The notes beneath the pieces are model-generated. The model ran no database searches. It had not been told where the DNA came from and saw only the letters and a list, made by a program, of their open reading frames with translations. Below are positions 14,404-59,313 of a stretch of DNA of 64,000 nucleotides, in pieces (position 1 is the stretch's first letter; every line of letters starts with the position of its first letter). The translations under genes and the position numbers were made by a program. The stretch comes from Gekko japonicus (Eukaryota): the NCBI RefSeq assembly GCF_001447785.1, contig NW_015173272.1, forward strand, positions 1 through 64,000, given 5' to 3'.

Positions 14404-15584
14404 CTAGATTCCCCATCAGCATGGAATCGCTGTTATAGGATTCCAATACAGAAACCTATGTAAAGGACAAATGAGTCACAGTTTACACTGATATGTTGCT
14501 TGTAAGAAGCTGTTTAGTATGATTATTATAGATGTTGATTCATTTTATATATTCATTTTATAGGTCAAAAGTGAAATTAATGATCTACAGGTCGGGGGGG
14601 GGGGGGCGAGTCATCAGGTGCCCTTGATCTGTGCTTGAGGTCTGGGTGGAGCATGGTTTGTAGTATGGACTGGATTAAGGAGGGTTGGGTTGGAATGCTA
14701 AACTAGGGGAACATTTCTTCTTTGAGTTAGGGAGCTGGGACTGCATGTTTTCCTAGGTTCCCTCCCACCAGGAAATTAAGTGTTCTGTTTTGTTTCCAAT
14801 GGGGATAATTAAGAATTTCCGGCATGCTTTTAATGTATCTGCAAAGCTGATCTGAGATGTTCATGATCAGTAGCAACTAGCCACCAATGAAACAAGCTGC
14901 TGGATATCCCTTTATAAATATATTGAGAACTTCTTTTTGTTACCGTCTACAGAAAGCTATTTTTTTACTAGTAAGACATGTAGAAGACTCCAATGAACAC
15001 AAGGAGGTAACACTGCTCCTTTCTCAACTTATGCTGCAAAATTTGGAATCATACAAGGAAAACAGATTGCAGTCCTTCAAGGTGTGAGCACAATCAGTAA
15101 GTCTGTTTATGTTTACTGTAATGGCTGAAGAAGAACTAAAGGGTACAGGAGAAGCTACTGTGAGTATAGTGAATTCCGTGCTATTATGTTTACTGTAATG
15201 GCTGAAGAACTAAAGGGTACAGGAGAGCTACTGTGAGTATAGTGAATTCCGTGCTGAAGTAAGTGCAAATCCCCACTCTACCATGAAGATCACTGGATGA
15301 CCTTAGACTTTTCACTTCTTCTCTGCCTAACTTACCTCTTAGGACTGTTTTGGAGAAAAAGGACATTGTACACTGCCCTGAGCTGCTTGACTAAAAGATG
15401 GGGTAAGGGTGTAATATGTAGCTGAAGAGGCACCCTCCTTATTTTTCAGCATAACTGTAAACTGTACAAGCTATTTCAAAGGAAGAACTTGAATTACCTT
15501 TGTAATATTTGTTCTGCTGTTATGTTCAGAGGGATATTTTTCACATATACAATTTCCTTCTTCCCATAGGTGTCATGGGAAGTC

Positions 15585-16505
15585 ATGGTAGGAAACCAAA
15601 CTGATGAAGGCTTCTTTTGGCTCCTCGGCCTTTCCAATGATCTTCAGCTCCAGGTTCTCCTATTTGTCCTGTTCTTGTTAATTTATCTGTTAACTGTAGT
15701 GGCAAATGTTATGATCGTGATGGCTGTGAAATCCAACCCTAAGCTTCAGAACCCCATGTACTTCTTCTTGAGTCATCTCTCTTTCCTGGATGTCTGTTAC
15801 TCATCTGTCACACTCCCAAAGATGCTGGAGACCACCATTGCCAAAGAGAAGACTATATCTGTCAGTGGATGCTTTGCTCAGGCATTCTTTATTTTGTTTT
15901 CAGCCACTATAGAGGGTTTCATTCTCTCATCAATGGCTTATGACAGGTACTGTGCCATATGCAAACCACTGCATTACATGAACATCATGAATATAGCATT
16001 CAGTTGGAAGCTAGTGGCTACTTCATGGACAATTGGTTTCTTGAATGCACTTGCAAACACCTTGCCACTTTTACGGTTAGAATTCTGTGGGGCAAACATC
16101 ATAAAGCACTTCAGTTGTGAGCTGCCTTCTATCCTTTCTTTGTCCTGCTCTGACACATTCATGAACAAAATGTTGTTCTTCATGGCTGGAGGCACAGTTG
16201 GTGTAGTCACTGTTTTCCTCATTGTAGTCTCCTATATTCATATCATTTCTACCATCCTGAGAATCACCTCCACAAAGGGGAGGCAGAAAGCTTTCTCTAC
16301 CTGCAGTTCCCACCTAAGTGTAGTGACTCTTTTCTATGGGACAAGTTACTTCCGCTATCTTAGACCAAGCTCAGCATCATCTGTGGTTTGGGATGAAATA
16401 CTTTCCATACAATACAGCATCCTCATACCATTACTAAACCCCATCATCTACAGCTTACCAAACAAGGAGATGAAGGCATCATTTAAGAAGATATTAAAAT
16501 GGTGA
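15585..16505 (+). CDS. Olfactory receptor, intact (paralogue B)
   Basis: ATG at 15585; same OR motifs and near-identical to paralogues A and C; acceptor AG at 15568-15569. Confidence 0.97.
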   Translation: MVGNQTDEGFFWLLGLSNDLQLQVLLFVLFLLIYLLTVVANVMIVMAVKSNPKLQNPMYFFLSHLSFLDVCYSSVTLPKMLETTIAKEKTISVSGCFAQAFFILFSATIEGFILSSMAYDRYCAICKPLHYMNIMNIAFSWKLVATSWTIGFLNALANTLPLLRLEFCGANIIKHFSCELPSILSLSCSDTFMNKMLFFMAGGTVGVVTVFLIVVSYIHIISTILRITSTKGRQKAFSTCSSHLSVVTLFYGTSYFRYLRPSSASSVVWDEILSIQYSILIPLLNPIIYSLPNKEMKASFKKILKW

Positions 16506-21679: not shown

Positions 21680-24600
21680 TAAGTAAAACACTAAATCACT
21701 GTTTATAATTTTACATTTTTTTCTGTTTTTATATTATGTTAAATGTGAATTATTAAAGTATTTTTATAATGATTCATTAACACAATTACAACTTAAGCAT
21801 TAACCATGAAGCTCAACAGTACATTCAGAATGATGTCACTTCTGTAGAAATATTTACAGCCAATAATAAGGTCTTATCTTAGGTACAAGGTCCTAATCTA
21901 ATATACTTATTACAAAAACAACAAATACAAACAACGGCATTCTAGTAATCATTCTGTTTGAGTATTCTTCATCAGGTTTGTCTGTTGTTGTTGATTCAAC
22001 ACAATCTTTTTTTTTAAGCCCCCGGAGGGGATTTTTTATTGATTTTTTAAACACTACAAAAACTAGAACAGAAAAAAGGGAAAGGGAAAGCTACATATAA
22101 GGGAGAAAGTAAAGAACCCACTACTAACTAAAAACCCAAGAGAGGAGATCTCCAACTAGCTTTTTATACTTCATTCAGACTTTTCATCTTTGTACTTCTT
22201 ATGAACTGTGTCAATCTTTTAACCCTTTTAACCATCCCCAGTTACATTTAATTGCCCAATAACAGTGCCCCCCATCATCCCCTAGAAACAAAAGTTCTCA
22301 AAGGAACAATTCAGAGTCCTTCAGCCTTTACTTCTTCGTCTCTCTCTTCCGCAGTTTGTAGGAACTTTTCGGGGCTGATGCCCCCTGCTCAGACAAAGAG
22401 TCCTCACCAGACGAACCAGTTTCCAGCTCTCCACTGGACTTATCGTCCTCTTCTTTTTTCTCATCCTCTGGCCTTCCCAGCTGCTCCTTTAGAAACTCTT
22501 GAGCTTTAAGAACAGAGTCAATCTTGACCTTCTTCTCCTTGATCTTGAATATTACTCCTTCTGGAAACAGCCATTTATATCCAATTGAGTTTGTTTGGAG
22601 GAAAAACACAAGTTCTTTGTATTTCTTTCTGCATTGTCTTACTTCAAATGGAGTATAAACAGACGCTTTTAATAAACAGAATAAAGTTTATTTAGTACAG
22701 GCTTGCAATCAGACTACTCAGGATTACAAAATAACAAAACTTATGGCCGATGGCCCTAACTAAACATTAGAGATCTGCATAGTTACCAGGATGATCCATA
22801 GTCAAGAAGTCTCAGTATAAAGTCCAATTAGGTCCCATCTTTGTGCAAGCATGTAGCCATGTGCTCAGCTCCAAAGAAATCCTTTGTCTCTGTTAGGAGC
22901 CACATGGTAGCATAGCATNNNNNNNNNNNNNNNNNNNNNNNNNNNNNNNNNNNNNNNNNNNNNNNNNNNNNNNNNNNNNNNNNNNNNNNNNNNNNNNNNN
23001 NNNNNNNNNNNNNNNNNNNNNNNNNNNNNNNNNNNNNNNNNNNNNNNNNNNNNNNNNNNNNNNNNNNNNNNNNNNNNNNNNNNNNNNNNNNNNNNNNNNN
23101 NNNNNNNNNNNNNNNNNNNNNNNNNNNNNNNNNNNNNNNNNNNNNNNNNNNNNNNNNNNNNNNNNNNNNNNNNNNNNNNNNNNNNNNNNNNNNNNNNNNN
23201 NNNNNNNNNNNNNNNNNNNNNNNNNNNNNNNNNNNNNNNNNNNNNNNNNNNNNNNNNNNNNNNNNNNNNNNNNNNNNNNNNNNNNNNNNNNNNNNNNNNN
23301 NNNNNNNNNNNNNNNNNNNNNNNNNNNNNNNNNNNNNNNNNNNNNNNNNNNNNNNNNNNNNNNNNNNNNNNNNNNNNNNNNNNNNNNNNNNNNNNNNNNN
23401 NNNNNNNNNNNNNNNNNNNNNNNNNNNNNNNNNNNNNNNNNNNNNNNNNNNNNNNNNNNNNNNNNNNNNNNNNNNNNNNNNNNNNNNNNNNNNNNNNNNN
23501 NNNNNNNNNNNNNNNNNNNNNNNNNNNNNNNNNNNNNNNNNNNNNNNNNNNNNNNNNNNNNNNNNNNNNNNNNNNNNNNNNNNNNNNNNNNNNNNNNNNN
23601 NNNNNNNNNNNNNNNNNNNNNNNNNNNNNNNNNNNNNNNNNNNNNNNNNNNNNNNNNNNNNNNNNNNNNNNNNNNNNNNNNNNNNNNNNNNNNNNNNNNN
23701 NNNNNNNNNNNNNNNNNNNNNNNNNNNNNNNNNNNNNNNNNNNNNNNNNNNNNNNNNNNNNNNNNNNNNNNNNNNNNNNNNNNNNNNNNNNNNNNNNNNN
23801 NNNNNNNNNNNNNNNNNNNNNNNNNNNNNNNNNNNNNNNNNNNNNNNNNNNNNNNNNNNNNNNNNNNNNNNNNNNNNNNTTGCAGCTGCTTTTTGTTGTG
23901 CAGTAATATTTGCTGTTACATCAAACATCTGTTCTTTAAAGACATTGAGCTGTTCCAGCAGAGGGCGCATGACCTCTGTCATCGCCTTCGTCGTCTCACT
24001 GGTTGTTTCCGGCACCTTTGGGGACTCTAGTTTTGCTTTTAAAAGTTTCTCTTTGTCTCTGTCCCTCTTCCCTGCCATCTTTTTCTCGTTTGTTTGCTTT
24101 CACAATAAATTTTAAAGTCTCTGAATATGCGCTTATCTGTATAGCTCGCTGAGTGAGTACTTCTGGGCAATTTCTTGTTTATTCTTCCACTCCCTCCCCT
24201 TTCGCTTCAATGATTTATGGCCATGGGAGGCGTCCCTCCCATCACTCGCTTCTGCCGTTTTGCCGCTTCGGGTAAGGAGTGTCTTTTCGTTTAAAAATCA
24301 GTTCTCATTTGACTCACGTTCATAGTTGGTGTTCCGACCCCTCTTCATCATCATTTCAAATGCCTGATCTCCTGAGCTTGACCCGGCTAGCTTCACTTGT
24401 ACCATCAGGTCTCTCAGCTGGACGGACCACTGGAGCAAGGGGGAGCCTCGATTCTCTGGCATTCGGCCAGAGAAGAGGCTACCCCCTCAAAGCCCCTTGG
24501 CCAGGAGCCCTTCCCCGGGCTCCTGGGGGGGGGTATGAGCCTGCTCACCCCCTCCGTCTGCCAGAGCATGGAGACACCCCCGGGAGGTCCAGGAGGTGAG

Positions 24601-28202: not shown

Positions 28203-30180
28203 TGTTAGCCGTACTGCTTTATCTACAACAGCTGGCAAACTAAATTTAAATTTGGGTTCCTGCTTTTGTATACTGAAGTCCAATCCACTCCAAGGTTTTT
28301 ACCAGTGAGAGAGAAATGAGACTGGTGTGTTCCAAAACAATTTGTCTTTTACTTAAGAATATATATAATCACATACACACAAAATCAGATTCACACATAC
28401 AATCAATCAAGTTCCTTAGAAATACCGAATTACAATAGTCACTATAGAAATCATAGGTAGGGCTATGGGTTGCAATACTTATCTGTCCTGAAGCTTGTCC
28501 TTCTCAATGAAGAATAGAGGGGTCAGAAAATATACTAGTGAGATTTAACACAGAGCTAGAAACCAGCCAACATGTGTGGACCTCGTGGCTGCAGACCAAG
28601 AGATCAAGTAGGAACAAAGGATTTTTGAATAGGAAGCTGGGCTTGAGAGGGGTTTCAAGTAGACAGAGGGCATAGGTGGGGGTAGGCGGCTAGCAAACGC
28701 TAAGCAGCTGGACCTCACCTTTTATAGGTGAATCCTTTAGTGAGTGGCAACCATGCCAGTCTGTAAACCCACCTACCTGTAAGTCCATCCCAAAACGAAC
28801 CTCATTGGTGCGTGTAGTAAGGGTTTGCCACCTAAAGGGTTTGGCCAATATTGAAACTCTAGACTCTAACTCAAGAGGAGGCATCTGGTGAAGTGTGAAA
28901 GCTTGGTGCTAGGATGCTCATTGAAGTGCAGATGAATCTTGCCCATTCCCAGGTAATCAAAGCCCGTCTGACAGGAAATGGTTATTTAGATGTAGAGCAG
29001 AAATGTGTATATGTGTGCTTTCAACAGTTCATCAATGGAGGCTGATTTCAAACAAGTTGTTGTTTGGCTGGCAACAATAACGATGTGCTTCTTCTTCCCC
29101 TCAGGCAGCAGCTGTGTATTTGAAACCTCATTAACATGTAAGGCTTAGAGCAGGTCACTATCTATGTGTATCTCACAACAAGCGACTTGTACAGCATTCC
29201 TTGAGCCTATGGGTGTATGCATGCACAGTCCATGTGGTGTTGTCAGCAAATAAAGCAAAGATTAGCCTCAATTTTTAACAGAGGTTTCAGCTACACAGCA
29301 TCAGCCTGGTGGGGAAGCACACATCTCCATTATTGTCACCAAAACAACAACTTGAGCAGAGACAGCCCCATTGCTGAATCAGTTGGGCTCACGTACAACG
29401 CATCCATGCTTTCTTCTACATTGGTATTTCCTGTCAAATCAACATTTGTTTCACAAAGTGGATGGCCAGCTTCATCTGCACTTCAGTGAAGCATCTTGAC
29501 GTCAAGGGTTTCACATCTGATCAGATGCCCTTCTTTGAGTAAGGTATTAGATTTCAATATTGACCACTCCTTTAGGCAACCTCACACTCCTATAGGTAAC
29601 CAATAGGATTGTTTTTGGGATGGACTAACAGGAAGGTGGGCCAGGAGGTTGGCACCGTCAACACCCATCTCCTGGATCTCCGATAAAAAAAGAGAACCAG
29701 TCACATGGTCTCTCTCTCTCTCTCTACTTGATCAACTAGCATCTCCCTGCAACAACCCCTGTCTGCTTTAACTCCTCTTTTGTCCAGCTTGCTATCACAA
29801 ACCCTTGCCTCTACTGCCTACACGTGCTGGCTGGTTCTAGTCATGTGTTAAATTCCCTTAGATTTTTATTTTCTCCCCATCCATTCTTAATTGGAACAAC
29901 CAAGCTGTGAAGACAGATAAGTATCACCCATCATCACCCTACCTGCTAATGCAACAGTGCTTATTTTAACCCTGTATTTCTAAGGAACTTGTTTGAATGT
30001 GTGAGTGCATCAGTATTGTTTGTATGTGATTTATATTCTTAAGTAAAAGACATTTATTTTAACAACACCAACCTCGGCTTCCTCTCTGGTAACCCTCGGT
30101 GGGAACAGGACCTTGGTATAGTTGGCAAGCACCAAGTTTAAAATTTGCCAATTGCTGTAGATAAAGCAATTCGGCTAACA
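28203..30180. mobile_element. ~2 kb imperfect palindrome of two head-to-head LTR-like units
   Basis: TGTTAGCCG...CGGCTAACA; 28203-29145 aligns with the reverse complement of 29265-30180 along its length. Confidence 0.8.
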
Positions 30181-31483
30181 CAGTTGGTTGCTTTATTTCA
30201 GTTCTGCCCCATTTTGATTAGGGGATGCAGTACTGGTTTGTTATTCCAGACTGTTCCTAAAGTAATCCAGGCATAGCACTGACTGTTCTGAGATAACTTT
30301 ATATATAATATTTTAGGAAAAACAGAGTGATACCAAAACACAACTATTTACAAACTAGGAATAAGGCCATGACAAGTTGGCTGTCTTCGACCCGCTGGCC
30401 CGCACCTCCCAGTTCCAGCAGCCTCACAGCGGGGGCATTCGGACACTTGGGCATGGCTCTCCAGGTGCACAGACCAGCCTGACCGACCCCATCCAAGGTG
30501 CTTGCTTCACGCCATCTGCCGCTTCGCTCGCTGCTTGGTGCCATCCCACTCGCAGTGAAGTGCAGAGGTGAGTTTCCAGGCCAGAGGCTGTTGCTGCTGT
30601 GGATTGTGCCCCTGGCTCCCCCACCCAGTGCCCAGACACACTCCTCAAGGCCGGCCCCGAGTGCCTCCCTAACCCACCACCAGCGGTTCTCCCCATGCAC
30701 CAGGCGGAAGGAAGGTGCGGGACTCCTCACCACTAGACAGAGCAGGAGCCGCTCGCTCTGTGCTTCCTTCCCAAGGGACTGGGCCAAGTGCCCCCCCCAT
30801 CGAGCCAAGGGTGCAGCACAACTCAGAGTCCATGGCTGGCCAGCCTCCTGTCCTGTTCCCATGGGACGCATGTGCCCCTGTGAGCTGGAGGAGGGAGGTA
30901 GGGGGAGGCCTCCCACCCTGTTGGCTTCCCACTTGCAACACTGTGGCTGCGTGCCCCAGGCCATGCCAACTGGTACTCCTAGCCCCAGCCACACGCAGGT
31001 TAATGCCAGCATTGACGGCCTTCCATGTGTCTGGCCAGCCTTGGCCCGACCAATGCGAACTCCAAGCCCCAGCACAGATCCTGCTGCCATCCTTAGGTTT
31101 CCCAGCACTGAACTGGATCACCGTGGCCCGCCCCCCGGGACGAGCCACTCCAACCTTTCCCACCTCTGGAGGAGGGGAGGCGAGCCATGGCTGGCAGCCC
31201 ATTTGGTCAGGGGTCGTTTCGAGGCTGAGTGCAGCAGAGCGGCACTCCAGTAGTCGAGCTGACCACCTCCAATGTTCCCTTTAAGCTGCGCCAGTCCCCA
31301 GTGCACAAATCTGAAGCTTAGCACAGGGCCAGGAAACTCACCATTGCCCCAGGGCTACCTCAGGTGCGGGGGAGAGGCAAAAAAGCCAAGCCTCCCCCCC
31401 CCTGCACCAAAGAAGATCTTCTCCCCCAGGGAGGAGGCGCTGCCAGCCATTTAAAGAGAACAGCGGGGCTGCCAGTCAGCTTT

Positions 31484-31921
31484 TCACTTAAAATGGCCAG
31501 CAGCCATTTCAGGTCCCTGAAACGCAGGGCGGGAATATCTGCGGGGCTTCCACTTCACCCCCCGCTTTAGAAGCGGGGAAGCGAAATGGAGCCCTGAAAT
31601 GGTGGCGGCATGAGGTCCCCAGGTGGGGTCTATTTCTCCTGTGGCTGGGGTGGGCGGGGCAGTATTGGAAGCAGGTGGGCGCCTTCTGCGAAAGGGCCGG
31701 AACTTGTAACCGGGATGGTCATGGAGGTGTCTGGTGCAGAGGCGCTTGGCCTCCTCCACAAAGGGTGGCTTCTCGGCAGCTGGCATGCACTTTCAGGTGG
31801 TACCAAGGTGCTTCGAGATCTCAGCATCATGCATCTGTGGGTGCTCCTGCTGCACCATCCGCCACCGTGCCCTCCACAGAAAGGCATTCATCGGCCACTT
31901 CACCCACTCCTTGGCCACCAT
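31484..31921 (-). pseudogene. SOX-family HMG-box pseudogene (SOX15/SoxG-like)
   Basis: One frame reads [80 protein letters not shown]. It carries the SOX signature (R)[35 protein letters not shown] at 31793-31795 replaces the conserved Trp. Confidence 0.88.
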
Positions 31922-31974
31922 CAGTGCCCCGTCCCGTGCCCTGAACACCCTCCGCACCCTGTTTCGGCTCCTTT

Positions 31975-32400
31975 GTTTCAATTTCTTTCTTCCCCTTCCA
32001 TTTTTTCCATTTCCCCTTTGTTTTCCCATCTTTCTCTTCCCCCCCTTTCCCCTCCCTTTCTATTTGTTTCTTCCCACTTCTTTTTCCTTTATCTCAATTC
32101 TTTCTTTTCATTTCCCCCCTTTTTCCCTTTCGTTATTTTCTTTCAATTTCTTTCCTTTCCATTCCATTTTTCTTTCCCTTTCCCCCCCATTTCTTTTCCT
32201 TTCTTTTCCTTCTTTCACTTTTTCCCTTTCCCTCCCTTTCTTTCTTTCATTCACCTCTCTTTTTCTCTCTGTCTCTCCCTTTTCCCCTTTGTTTCCATTT
32301 CTATTATTTCCTTCATTCCCTTTTATCCCTTTCTTTCCCTTTCCTCCTTCCTTCCTTCCTCTTTCGATTTTTCCATTTCTTCATATGTTTGTATGTTTTT
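31975..32400 (+). repeat. Polypyrimidine/polypurine low-complexity tract
   Basis: ~420 bp of almost only C and T on +. Confidence 0.95.
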
Positions 32401-33495
32401 GAACTTAATTTTTTTTTAAAAAAAGAATTAGGCATGCTCCCAACATTTATGCTTGTAGATTTTTTGGCTCACAAGGTAGGATTCATCAGCCACATGTGGA
32501 AAATCAGTTGTAATTGTAGTGGATTCCCAGGTCCTGCCTGGAGGTTGGCAACCAACCTTAGGTTTGTGCATGCTGCCCACAGAGGAAAGAAGCTGCAGTT
32601 GCCACCCTCTGGTGTTTTGTGGGTTTATTCCTGGGGGGGCGGGCGGGCTGCTTTCACTGCTTCTCCAGTGACCCACTCAGGGGCTTGCAAAGGGGACCAT
32701 CCAAATGGGAACTAGTAGACGGTAACACTAGATTGCCATAATGTTATTGCACTATAATGGAATAGTAATTATCGGGGTGGGGGGTTAAGCCCTTTGGTGG
32801 TGCAGTGGGGAAAATGGAAGTCACTAGGGGCTGATGGAGGGAAAATGATACTAATGTGGGCAAGGCCTTTGAAAATGTACACCTTCCCATTCAGATGGCT
32901 TGCTAGCATGCTTGGATTGGTGTTCTTTCCAGATCACGTTCGAGAGAGAACATACTGAGAACAGAGAATGCCTGGAAAAAGGATAGTTTTGGGTGGGTGG
33001 CCATGTTGGTCCAAAGCAGTAGAACAAAGTTTGAATCCCATGACACCTTTAAGAACAACGAAGTTTTATTCTGGGTATAATCTTTTGTGCATGTACACTT
33101 CTTCAGCTACAATGAAATGGAAATTACCAGTCCATACATTTTTATCTCACTACATATGCTAACTTCAGCCCTTACAGCTATATTCTCACCAATGCCCCCA
33201 GAAGGGCCATACATCCTCTTTATTGTACTTTATTTCTTATTTGGAATAATTGATTAGAATAGTAGATTGTAATGTAACATGATAATAGTAGAATGTACTG
33301 TAATTTGGAATGGTAGATTGGAATGTATTTCTCTGGTCTGGAGACAGGGGAGACAACTCTACACGGCCAATCACCCAACTTCAAAGAAGAAGATGCTGTA
33401 AGGTTGCCTCCATGCTTGAGAGGAGATGGATGGAGCGTAATGACAGGGTCTCAGTTAATTGGTCTCAGCATTCCACAAGTAAAGATACATCTGCC

Positions 33496-33798
33496 CAGGG
33501 GTTATTTCGAGGCGGAATGAGCCAGAACGGAACATTATAATAAATGTTTGTTACACTGAAACCAATTAACATCTTGACTATTTTCTTTGTTGTGCTTTTG
33601 AAGCAGTTTTTCTCCAGGTAGACTCGCCAGCTCTGAGCTGGGAAATACCTGGAGATTTTTGGGGTGGAGCCTGAATGGTGAGTGTTGCCTTCTGACACAC
33701 TTCTGGTGAAGTCAGGGGGTGTGGCATATGCAAATAAGTTATGCTAATGAGTTATGCTAATGAGCTCCTGCACCTCTTTTTCTACGAAATGACCCCTG
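33496..33798. mobile_element. hAT-like MITE (family of 25645)
   Basis: TIR CAGGGGTTATTTCG / CGAAATGACCCCTG; shares its 3' body with the 25645 copy. Confidence 0.75.
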
Positions 33799-36700: not shown

Positions 36701-36940
36701 TGTTTTGGAGAAGGACACTATACACTGCCCTGAGCTCCTTGACAAAAGTATGGGATAAAGGTGTAATATGTACCTGAAGAGGCCCTCGCCTTATTTTTCA
36801 GCATAACTGTAAATTGTACAAGGTATTTTAAAGAAAGAACTAGCATTATCTTTGTAATGTGTGTTCTGTTGTTATGTTCAGTGGGATATTTTTCACATAT
36901 GTTATTTCCTTCTTTCTGTAGGTGTTCTGGATTGTCAGTC

Positions 36941-37861
36941 ATGGTAGGAAACCAAACTGATGAATGCTTCTTTTGGCTCCTTGGCCTTTCCAATGATCTT
37001 CAGATCCAGATTCTCCTCTTTGTCCTATTCTTGTTAATTTATCTGTTAACTGTAGTGGCAAATGCTATGATCATGCTGGCTGTAAAATCAAACCCTAATC
37101 TCCAGAACCCCATGTACGTCTTCTTGAGTCATCTCTCTTTCCTTGATGTCTGTTACTCATCGGTCACAGTCCCAAAGATGCTGGAGACCACCATTGCCAA
37201 AGAGAAGACTATATCTGTCAGGGGATGCTTTGCTCAGGCATTCTTTATTTTGTTTTCAGTCACTACAGAGGGTTTCATTCTCTCATCAATGGCTTATGAC
37301 AGGTACTGTGCCATATGCAAACCACTGCATTACATGAACATCATGAATATAGCATTCAGCTGTAAGCTAGTGGTTACTTCATGGACAATTGGATTCTTGA
37401 ATGCACTTGCAAACACCTTGCCACTTTTACGGTTAGAATTCTGTCGGTCAAATATCATAAAACACTTCATCTGTGAGCTCCCTTCCATCCTTCCTTTGTC
37501 CTGTTCTGACACATTCATGAACAAAATGTTGTTCTTCATGGCTGGAGGCACAGTTGGTGTAGTCACCGTTTCCCTCATTGTGGTCTCCTACATTCATATC
37601 ATTTCTACCATCCTGAGAATCAGCTCCACAGAGGGGAGGCAGAAAGCTTTCTCTACCTGCAGCTCCCACCTCAGTGTAGTGATTCTTTTCTATGGGACAG
37701 GTTACTTCCGCTATCTTAGACCAAGCTCAGCATCATCTGTGGTTTGGGATGAAATACTTTCCATACAATACAGCATCCTCACACCATTACTAAACCCCAT
37801 CATCTACAGCTTACCAAACAAGGAGATGAAGGCATCATTTAAGAAGATGTTAAAATGGTGA
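36941..37861 (+). CDS. Olfactory receptor, intact (paralogue C)
   Basis: ATG at 36941 aligns with the starts of A and B. The upstream extension in the ORF track is intron sequence (acceptor AG at 36920-36921). All OR motifs are present. Confidence 0.97.
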   Translation: MVGNQTDECFFWLLGLSNDLQIQILLFVLFLLIYLLTVVANAMIMLAVKSNPNLQNPMYVFLSHLSFLDVCYSSVTVPKMLETTIAKEKTISVRGCFAQAFFILFSVTTEGFILSSMAYDRYCAICKPLHYMNIMNIAFSCKLVVTSWTIGFLNALANTLPLLRLEFCRSNIIKHFICELPSILPLSCSDTFMNKMLFFMAGGTVGVVTVSLIVVSYIHIISTILRISSTEGRQKAFSTCSSHLSVVILFYGTGYFRYLRPSSASSVVWDEILSIQYSILTPLLNPIIYSLPNKEMKASFKKMLKW

Positions 37862-43185: not shown

Positions 43186-44136
43186 TTACATGACATGAGA
43201 AAGCAATGGTTTGTAGCCCATTAATTGTTTTATAGCTTCCTTCATATCCTTGGTTTTCAGGCTGTAGATGATGGGGTTCAACAAGGGGGTGCAGATGCTA
43301 TACTGAATGGAAAGGATCTCTTCCAGAACTATTGAAGAGATCAAGTCAGGCATCGTATACCTAAGCCAGCTAGAGCTATAGAACAAAACCAGAACAGTGA
43401 TGTGGGGAGTGCATGTAGAGAAGGTTCTTCTTTTAGCTTCTGCTGAATGCATTTTACAGACTGTAGAAAAAATGTGGAGATAGGACACTGAAATAAGAAG
43501 AAATGAAGAAATCCCAACTGCATTAGCAGTAATAGAAAGTATGATCCTATTGATATAAATGTCTGTGCAGGATAAAGCCAGTAAAGATGGTTGTTCACAG
43601 CTGAAGTGCCTGATAATATTTTGACCACAGAACATTAATTTCAACAAAGGTAAAGTATTTATCAAACCTTGTATGAAACCAATGGTCCAAGCACCTCCTA
43701 TCAGCAATCTACAAAGCACCCTGTTCATGATTTGTACATAATGTAAGGGCTTGCATATAGCAGCACATCGATCTAAAGCCATAACTGCAAGAATATAAAG
43801 TTCAGTGCATCCTGTCATAATGATGAAGAAGATCTGGGCAATGCAGCCATTGTATGAGATTGTGTGGCTTGAAAAGAAATTTACTAGCAACTTAGGCACC
43901 GTAGCTGATGAAAAGCAGAGGTCAATAAAAGACAGGTGACCGATGAAAAAGTACATGGGGCTCTGGAGGTTATCGTTCTTCCTTATTACTGCTATAATCA
44001 CCAGATTTCCCAGCAGAGTTATTGTATATATAAACAAAAACATCAGGAAGATGAAAATTTGGACTAGCAGATTGTCTGAAAATCCCAAGAGGACAAAATA
44101 AGTCACTGCAGTCTGGTTTTCCATTTCTTTTTCCAT
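43186..44136 (-). CDS. Olfactory receptor, intact ORF with divergent motifs
   Basis: Starts MEKEMENQT (ATG at 44136 or 44124); motifs LQSPMYFF, MALDRCAAIC, TFSTCTPH and PLLNPIIYSLK; acceptor TTTTGCAG ends at 44161 on -. Confidence 0.95.
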   Translation of the reverse strand: MEKEMENQTAVTYFVLLGFSDNLLVQIFIFLMFLFIYTITLLGNLVIIAVIRKNDNLQSPMYFFIGHLSFIDLCFSSATVPKLLVNFFSSHTISYNGCIAQIFFIIMTGCTELYILAVMALDRCAAICKPLHYVQIMNRVLCRLLIGGAWTIGFIQGLINTLPLLKLMFCGQNIIRHFSCEQPSLLALSCTDIYINRIILSITANAVGISSFLLISVSYLHIFSTVCKMHSAEAKRRTFSTCTPHITVLVLFYSSSWLRYTMPDLISSIVLEEILSIQYSICTPLLNPIIYSLKTKDMKEAIKQLMGYKPLLSHVM

Positions 44137-44464
44137 TTTTTGTTCAGCAAACAATGTAAGCTGCAAAAATCAGACAGACAAAAATAATTAGGTATGGTGA
44201 GTTAGATGTGGTCTGTGGTGCAACAACATGTCATCAGGTTCCACCATATTTGGCAGCCCGTGACAGGTCCTAGCTACGGGTGAGCATCCAGATATATTGC
44301 AACAAAAAAACCCAACACCATTATTCCCTATTTTTGGGGATCCCAATACCAGCATGGTATTTGGATTTAGGTTTTATTTGGGAATCTCATATTACTCATC
44401 TGTATTATAGCCTATGGGGAACATATCTGGGGGTGTGGGGGCTGTTTTCATTAAGCTAGAGGCA

Positions 44465-58380: not shown

Positions 58381-59313
58381 ATGGCCAATCAAACCATAAT
58401 AACTGAGTTTATACTCTTGGGGCTCTCCAGTGACCCACAGCTACAGGTTTTTCTCTTCTTGTTCTTTCTAATAATATTTTCAGTGACGTTATTAGGAAAT
58501 GCAACAATTATTGTGGTGATCAGGATGGAGGCTGGCCTTCAAAGCCCAATGTTCTTTTTCCTCAGCCATTTAGCCTTTGTGGATATCTGCTATTCCTCCG
58601 TCACTCTCCCAAAGATGCTGGAGAACTTCATTGCAAAGAACACAACCATTTCCCAGAGAGGATGCATTGCTCAGATCTTTTTCTTTTTCCAGTCTGCTTG
58701 TGCTGAGGTTTTCATCCTCTCAGCAATGGCTTTTGACCGCTATGTCGCCATCTGTGACCCACTGCGATATTCAACCATTATGAAAAAAACTGCCTGCAGA
58801 CAGCTGGTGGGTGGATCCTGGTCAATGGGTTTCTTATATGCGATGGTAAATGCATTGCCATTGGTAAATGCACAATTTTGTGGGAACAATAAAATCAGTC
58901 ACTATAGCTGTGAACTTCCTTCCCTCTTGCCGTTGTCTTGCAGCGACCCTCTCAGCAATTATGTTGTGCTTCTCATCACTGTATTAGTATTTGGGTTAAG
59001 CTCCTTCCTCCTCACTCTTGTTTCTTACATTCGCATCATCCCCACCATCCTGAAAATTCGTTCAGGAGAAGGCCGAAGCAAAGCCTTCTCCACCTGTAGC
59101 TCCCACCTCATTGTGGTTTGCTTATTCTACTCTGCAGCTTTTTTTCGGTATATGAAGCCCAGTTCTGAATCACTTATAGAACTGGACAAAGTGGTGTCAA
59201 TCCAGTACAGCATCTTAACACCCCTGTTAAATCCTATCATATATAGCCTAAAAAACAATGAAATTAAAACTGCTTTAGGAAAAAGATTTGGAAACTTTAG
59301 GTTTTTAAAATAA
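58381..59313 (+). CDS. Olfactory receptor, intact
   Basis: MANQT start; motifs LQSPMFFFLSHLAFVD, MAFDRYVAIC, KAFSTCSSHL and PLLNPIIYSLKN; acceptor TTCTTTTTACACAG ends at 58354. Confidence 0.98.
   Translation: MANQTIITEFILLGLSSDPQLQVFLFLFFLIIFSVTLLGNATIIVVIRMEAGLQSPMFFFLSHLAFVDICYSSVTLPKMLENFIAKNTTISQRGCIAQIFFFFQSACAEVFILSAMAFDRYVAICDPLRYSTIMKKTACRQLVGGSWSMGFLYAMVNALPLVNAQFCGNNKISHYSCELPSLLPLSCSDPLSNYVVLLITVLVFGLSSFLLTLVSYIRIIPTILKIRSGEGRSKAFSTCSSHLIVVCLFYSAAFFRYMKPSSESLIELDKVVSIQYSILTPLLNPIIYSLKNNEIKTALGKRFGNFRFLK

Follow-up and report, generated by a model that had tools for sequence, protein, structure and literature searches.

A decayed SOX15-like HMG-box fragment in an olfactory receptor cluster of Gekko japonicus

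The 64-kb stretch of Gekko japonicus DNA analyzed here (the window) carries on its minus strand a broken SOX-type HMG box whose nearest relatives are the SOX15 proteins of geckos. The box is interrupted by a stop codon, occurs in few copies, and lies among olfactory receptor (OR) genes. This relic is very probably a dead, fragmentary pseudogene derived from sox15 of the gecko lineage, a judgement that concerns its descent and its death and not the route by which it arrived; that route may have been a copying or relocation of DNA along the sox15 chromosome. As the SoxG gene, sox15 stands as the fourth ohnolog beside sox1, sox2 and sox3 and corresponds to fish sox19; it is a fast-evolving and repeatedly lost member of the sox1/2/3 quartet. 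It lies between fxr2 and mpdu1, and its loss, with no sox15-like sequence, has been reported for both Gekko japonicus and Paroedura picta (Ogita et al. 2021, PMC8244163).

The HMG box and its lesions

A preliminary description of this DNA had reported an ATG-initiated frame with a TGG>TGA stop, a small deletion after MNAF and decay of the methyl-CpG type. Its coordinates were correct, and the strand, which it had not given, proved to be minus, where frame 1 comprises 145 codons and a terminal TGA. The frame encodes a SOX-type HMG box followed by a Pro-rich tail (Table 1). The internal TGA was confirmed at 31795-31793 and stands as well in a contig of X1, another DNA run which does not represent the haplotype of the assembly and differs from it at several places; this contig (record 5) spans 31736-31965 with one difference and keeps the stop. 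Two codons after MNAF are missing in every alignment, a deletion that falls in helix 1 of the box, and the RPMNAF motif carries an R>W replacement, the relic reading WPMNAFL-W-. When the relic was compared with the majority residues of gecko SOX15, seven of the 33 amino-acid differences were single CpG transitions (R>W, R>H, R>C and A>T), as the methyl-CpG-type decay described earlier would have it. The relic ATG lines up with the initiating ATG of P0006, an intact SOX15-like protein considered below, and plus-strand base 31921 is changed from T to C in all three X1 contigs that cover it, where the ATG reads GTG.

Since the tools were given the two pieces of the frame separately, with read-through across an X at the stop used only in local scripts, each half of the box was scored on its own. 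Pfam HMG_box (PF00505) matched piece 1 at profile positions 2-37 with 20.6 bits and piece 2 at positions 42-69 with 15.5 bits; either piece alone falls under the cut-off of 25.4 bits, but the two are collinear. The nearest solved structure to piece 1 was SOX2 (E 7e-7) and that to piece 2 was SOX17/18 (E 8e-10), and a squamate SOX15 profile matched the two pieces with E-values of 7e-12 and 1e-14, far beyond chance. Both halves of the box were recognized by profile as belonging to the SOX family, and neither an intact RPMNAF(M/I)VW signature nor an open frame was present in the relic. The relic is a non-working remnant of the SOX family, its DNA-binding domain destroyed.

Table 1. Features of the relic and of its surroundings in the window.
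Feature	Coordinates	Strand	Evidence or remarks
OR ORFs (7tm_4)	406-1335, 15570-16505, 36857-37861, 43186-44166, 58381-59313		Pfam
High-copy transcribed repeat	29000-30187		Sharp end at 30187; positive control for read depth
AT-rich single-copy stretch	30188-30385	minus	AATAAA at 30197-30192; ends at repeat boundary
Rest of GC-rich island	30386-31177		No detectable SOX15 homology; about two copies in run X1
Moderately repeated segment	31178-31573		Peak at 31376-31474; SOX15 homology ends just before it
Read-through frame	31484-31921	minus	Translation: ATG, 42 codons, TGA, 102 codons, TGA
Post-box codons (about 34)	31601-31702	minus	Still align to SOX15: RRRR, Pro-rich stretch, P.WGP..A motif
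HMG box proper	31703-31900	minus	Pfam profile positions 2-69; split by the stop
In-frame TGA	31793-31795	minus	Codon 43; position of a conserved Trp (TGG in living SOX proteins)
Site of two-codon loss	31870-31879	minus	Alignments: MNAF(M/L)VWSR to MNAFL-W-R
GC-rich 44 bp 5' of ATG	31922-31965	minus	Alignment, GC profile; possibly a remnant of the 5'UTR
Polypurine (GA-rich) tract, imperfect, about 450 bp	31966-32420	minus	Directly 5' of the relic

Placement within SOX15

When 1.84 billion proteins were searched exhaustively with phmmer, the top named matches included the SOX-15 proteins of tenrec (the best, E 1.8e-9), guinea pig, box turtle and Eublepharis macularius. The tenrec alignment reaches query residue 69, about 30 residues beyond the box. 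Also among the best matches was P0006, an intact fragment of 128 amino acids from a Logan assembly. A further search, started from the Eublepharis protein, added SOX15 of squamates, turtles, mammals and amphibians together with fish sox19 and SOX2/3. When the 401 fetched proteins were ranked locally against the relic, P0006 came first at 65% identity, followed by Eublepharis SOX-15 at 60% and then by other SOX15 proteins. Mean identity was highest to gecko SOX15 taken with P0006 (60.9%), lower to amniote SOX15 (54.3%), and lowest to sox19 (47.0%) and SOX2/3 (47.7%). Two short motifs follow the same relatives: among all fetched proteins MNAFL is common only to the relic and P0006, and the HPQMH of the relic was found only in P0006 and Sphaerodactylus. 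Past the box, similarity to the SOX15-specific region continues to 31601 in the profile match, which constitutes modest evidence in a low-complexity stretch.

A maximum-likelihood tree was built from 86 alignment columns, the box being short and the branch of the relic very long. The relic was sister to P0006 (support 97/75), next to Sphaerodactylus SOX-15, and thus fell with amniote SOX15, which is parted from sox19, SoxB1 and SoxB2 by a branch with 98/99 support. Placement of the relic on the sox19/SoxB1 side was not rejected by the AU test (p 0.19), and a single gecko-only clade cost 1.35 log-likelihood units (p 0.14). The earlier assignment to SOX15 (SoxG) rather than to SoxB1 is supported by the search, the ranking, the gradient of identity and the tree. 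Intact lineage-specific relatives, which had also been suggested, exist in other geckos as the SOX-15 proteins of Eublepharis and Sphaerodactylus and as P0006.

P0006, the closest relative of the relic, is encoded on a Logan contig of 1063 nt and has four residues before the box. A separate group of SOX-like proteins from JGI/ENA metagenome contigs (P0005, P0010, P0011, P0017, P0027 and P0051) have a 38-residue stretch in common and resemble the relic in HPGYK and in the RRRRPP tail. This resemblance is probably convergence, and the group presumably represents eukaryotic DNA in metagenomes.

Extent of the homology

A profile of 14 squamate SOX15 proteins, run on the six frames of 29000-33500, matched solely 31915-31601, and overall homology extends from about 31960 to 31600. 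The recognizable surviving part is about the first 110 codons, comprising the start codon, the HMG box and some 34 codons more, and amounts to between a third and a half of the coding sequence, counted from its 5' end. The conserved C-terminus of squamate SOX15 was not found, either by the full profile in 29000-33500 or by a C-terminal profile. Position-specific matrices for four C-terminal blocks, applied to all minus-strand frames, likewise gave nothing above 400 dinucleotide shuffles (p 0.13-0.55).

Several candidates for the missing part were considered and set aside. Matches to the C-terminus picked by eye from tblastn, namely QGPEMAAG at about 31520, LGFFASPPHLR-stop at about 31400, QAASEAADG at about 30540 and PPL-stop at about 30430, were rejected on the profiles and on the comparison of the matrices with shuffles; these matches compete with one another and occupy different frames. 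The mammalian sox15 intron sits after YLPGSYG, as judged from guinea pig isoforms, and the relic lacks the stretch of the gene in which the exon junction would fall; matches to exon-2 motifs were seen by eye in two frames and places, none of them over chance. With Liasis and Podarcis, two matches were separated by what looked like a gap the size of an intron (31625 to 31201); the gap coincides with the repeated segment and was not relied on, the second match having an E-value of 0.016 in a target of 0.9 kb. None of the ORFs of the locus, which is unannotated, is present in a collection of 15 billion proteins.

Surrounding sequence

The OR cluster setting named in the preliminary description was found again, five intact 7tm_4 ORFs lying on both sides of the relic with the nearest at 36857 and 16505. 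The relic is not in the fxr2-mpdu1 position, and its reading as a displaced and decayed copy outside the canonical fxr2-sox15-mpdu1 context agrees with this. Geckos supply the best named relatives of the OR at 58381-59313 (Heteronotia 88%, over a partial sequence, Paroedura 87%, Eublepharis 86% and Euleptes 85%), as against at most 76% for squamates other than geckos, which marks the genome as that of a gecko.

The relic heads a GC-rich island of 1.6 kb (about 30380-31965), with a GC content of about 0.6 compared to 0.4 in the flanks. The polypurine tract upstream may be the expanded A-rich tail of a SINE-like element at about 32440-32620. This element contains GGTTGCCAACCTCCAGG, an inverted copy of which occurs at 29640-29654 inside the neighbouring repeat. 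Within the island, a short inverted repeat resembling a hairpin lies in 31469-31574 of the window, a stretch that is skipped or replaced in X1 contigs. A minus-strand ORF of 528 amino acids at 62360-63946 matches the reverse-transcriptase domain RVT_1 (E 7e-27) and indicates a retroelement. Another minus-strand ORF, of 416 amino acids at 22828-24078, has no Pfam hit and was rejected as a gap artefact, as it spans a run of N at 22919-23879. An Rfam search of the window gave no matches.

Copy number and expression

Whole-genome reads of run X7, sampled at about 1x of the genome and counted at 85% likeness, gave a depth of about 1-3 over 30188-31965, with a bump of 8.5 at 31376-31474. On the neighbouring repeat at 29000-30187, 1.8 kb from the relic, the depth was 50-1100. 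A multicopy, transposon-borne SOX family had been suggested for this sequence, and the read depth speaks against it; no more than two or three diverged copies were observed. Further X1 contigs correspond to such copies. Record 6 covers 31736-31962 at about 92% likeness, record 2 covers 30817-31187 at about 90% with a gap of 36 bp, and record 7, a contig of 3562 nt, is about 86% alike and matches 31790-31959 alone, which holds the N-terminal half of the box. Summed X1 contig depth corresponds to about one copy of 30188-30385, about two of 30386-31177 and about three of the HMG part; over 31178-31573 it rises to about 4-17 times the depth of one contig, which is about 70. The locus is single- or low-copy, with roughly two to three copies that are 86-92% alike, these numbers being rough since they combine summed contig depths with reads at about 1x.

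No RNA reads fell on 31475-31965 in run X6 (3% sampled) or run X8 (12% sampled), a result compatible with weak expression. On the neighbouring repeat at 29000-30187, RNA depth in X6 reached about 300 per bin.

Origin of the copy

The best explanation of these data would be that sox15 sequence was copied or relocated at the DNA level along its own chromosome and then re-duplicated locally, a route held with about even confidence. The copy would afterwards have decayed neutrally, about a quarter of its replacements being methyl-CpG transitions. SOX-15 and 8S1-like ORs lie on the same chromosome-scale record in all eight squamates for which such records were available (Eublepharis, Rhineura, Elgaria, Hemicordylus, Liasis, Vipera, Erythrolamprus and Sceloporus), as judged from an identical length of their longest contigs, a linkage at chromosome scale only. 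Because the two share a chromosome in these eight squamates, the relic too is probably on the sox15 chromosome, as read from the other species. A shared chromosome in turn mildly favours DNA-level copying, since a random retro-insertion is estimated to land there in 4-8% of cases and a DNA-level copy would be likely to. The diverged copies, which span more than 1 kb, and the retention of the 5' end with loss of the 3' coding part both point toward the DNA-level route. LINE-made copies are usually truncated at the 5' end. As to the same linkage in a turtle, SOX-15 and 8S1-like ORs of Emys lie on different records.

A processed retropseudogene, in which sox15 mRNA was reverse-transcribed by a LINE, inserted into the OR cluster dead on arrival and partly re-duplicated, is a possible though somewhat doubtful origin, and it competes with the DNA-level reading on the route only. 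Unrelated genes surround the locus, homology begins only about 45 bp upstream of the ATG, and the window contains ORFs for LINE reverse transcriptase. In addition, the GC-rich block of 1.6 kb followed by an AT-rich stretch with AATAAA at the repeat boundary has the layout and the size of an mRNA. However, no A-run was present on the 3' side of the relic and no word of at least 8 bp was shared between the candidate ends of the island, so neither a poly(A) tail nor a target-site duplication marks an insertion. The C-terminal coding blocks, which a copied mRNA would be expected to carry, did not exceed chance. A copy that keeps its 5' end and lacks its 3' coding part is also atypical of LINE products, and the probable location on the parent's chromosome would require one of the few random insertions estimated above.

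Relocation of the true ortholog, by which gekkotan sox15 left the fxr2-mpdu1 interval for the OR cluster or its vicinity and was later inactivated in this species, would be one particular form of the DNA-level route, and an unlikely one. Some geckos, namely Eublepharis, Sphaerodactylus and the organism from which P0006 comes, have the gene in intact form; SOX-15 is annotated by NCBI for two other families of geckos, and in the tree the relic groups with gecko SOX15. In two gekkonids mpdu1 and fxr2 are adjacent without sox15 (PMC8244163), and Eublepharis SOX-15 is found on one record of 81.09 Mb with the best Eublepharis ortholog of the OR from the window. This linkage, however, is seen equally in seven non-gecko squamates that keep sox15 and is no proof of a move; moreover, extra diverged copies exist and only a fragment of the gene is left.

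Capture or transduction of a SOX fragment by a transposable element, followed by its spread as a repeat family, is very improbable. The 3562-nt contig with only the N-terminal half of the box would suit it, as would the polypurine tract and SINE-like element directly upstream, but the relic has nothing of the read depth of the real repeat nearby, a second copy was not found within the 64-kb window, and neither terminal repeats nor a target-site duplication was found. A functional, SRY-like short SOX gene consisting of little beyond the HMG box, possibly sex-linked, can be dismissed almost entirely: the alignment of the ATG with the P0006 start implies a parent with a very short N-terminal arm and 102 codons stay open after the stop, but the box has a stop, lacks part of helix 1 and carries the R>W replacement in RPMNAF, another individual has GTG in place of the ATG, the box is without RNA reads (3-12% of runs sampled), long ORFs occur in several frames of the GC-rich island, making the openness compositional, and the locus is unannotated.

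The relic is functionless, doing nothing and decaying neutrally. No support was found for a role in sex determination, the copy being dead and its box without RNA reads. The preliminary description had itself named an ordinary retropseudogene as an outcome that would overturn it, and by its own terms the relic comes close to being an ordinary pseudogene.

The value of the relic is modest, as a fossil, without sign of function, of a gene whose loss has been reported for some Gekkota. If it can be dated, such a relic would help to time the loss of sox15, and together with intact SOX-15 of Eublepharis and Sphaerodactylus and with P0006 it could show if duplication or relocation preceded the loss. 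It is conceivable, though improbable, that sox15 was copied or moved along the chromosome to the OR cluster, is kept intact in its P0006-type form in part of the geckos, and decayed here; if so, what was published as a loss in Gekkonidae would amount to a relocation after which the gene died in particular lineages, and a new role could have been acquired by the copies that are still intact.

Comparison with known systems

The nearest known relatives over the box, 55-67% identical, are the gecko SOX-15 proteins (Eublepharis macularius, XP_054851190.1 = P0012; Sphaerodactylus townsendi, P0168) and P0006. These share with the relic QEHP(Q/K)MH, PFV.EAKRL, HL.DHP, the run of Arg after the box and the short N-terminal arm; they are intact, however, and the conserved C-terminus carried by the full-length ones (LGDF...YGLQ...PL.HL) is not detectable in the relic. 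Processed pseudogenes made by LINEs resemble the relic as isolated coding remnants which decay neutrally among unrelated genes, whereas the relic lacks poly(A) and a target-site duplication and is deficient at the 3' end instead of truncated at the 5' end. SRY resembles the HMG-centred architecture of the parent, with its very short N-terminal arm, HMG box and short tail, but SRY derives from SOX3 and is intact and Y-linked, while the relic is derived from SOX15 and broken. The Sox15 pseudogenes of marsupials (PMC8244163) likewise decayed under relaxed selection, their HMG boxes being disrupted by in-frame stops and by indels; they stand in situ between Fxr2 and Mpdu1, whereas the gecko relic is a displaced fragment in an OR cluster, with a few diverged copies.
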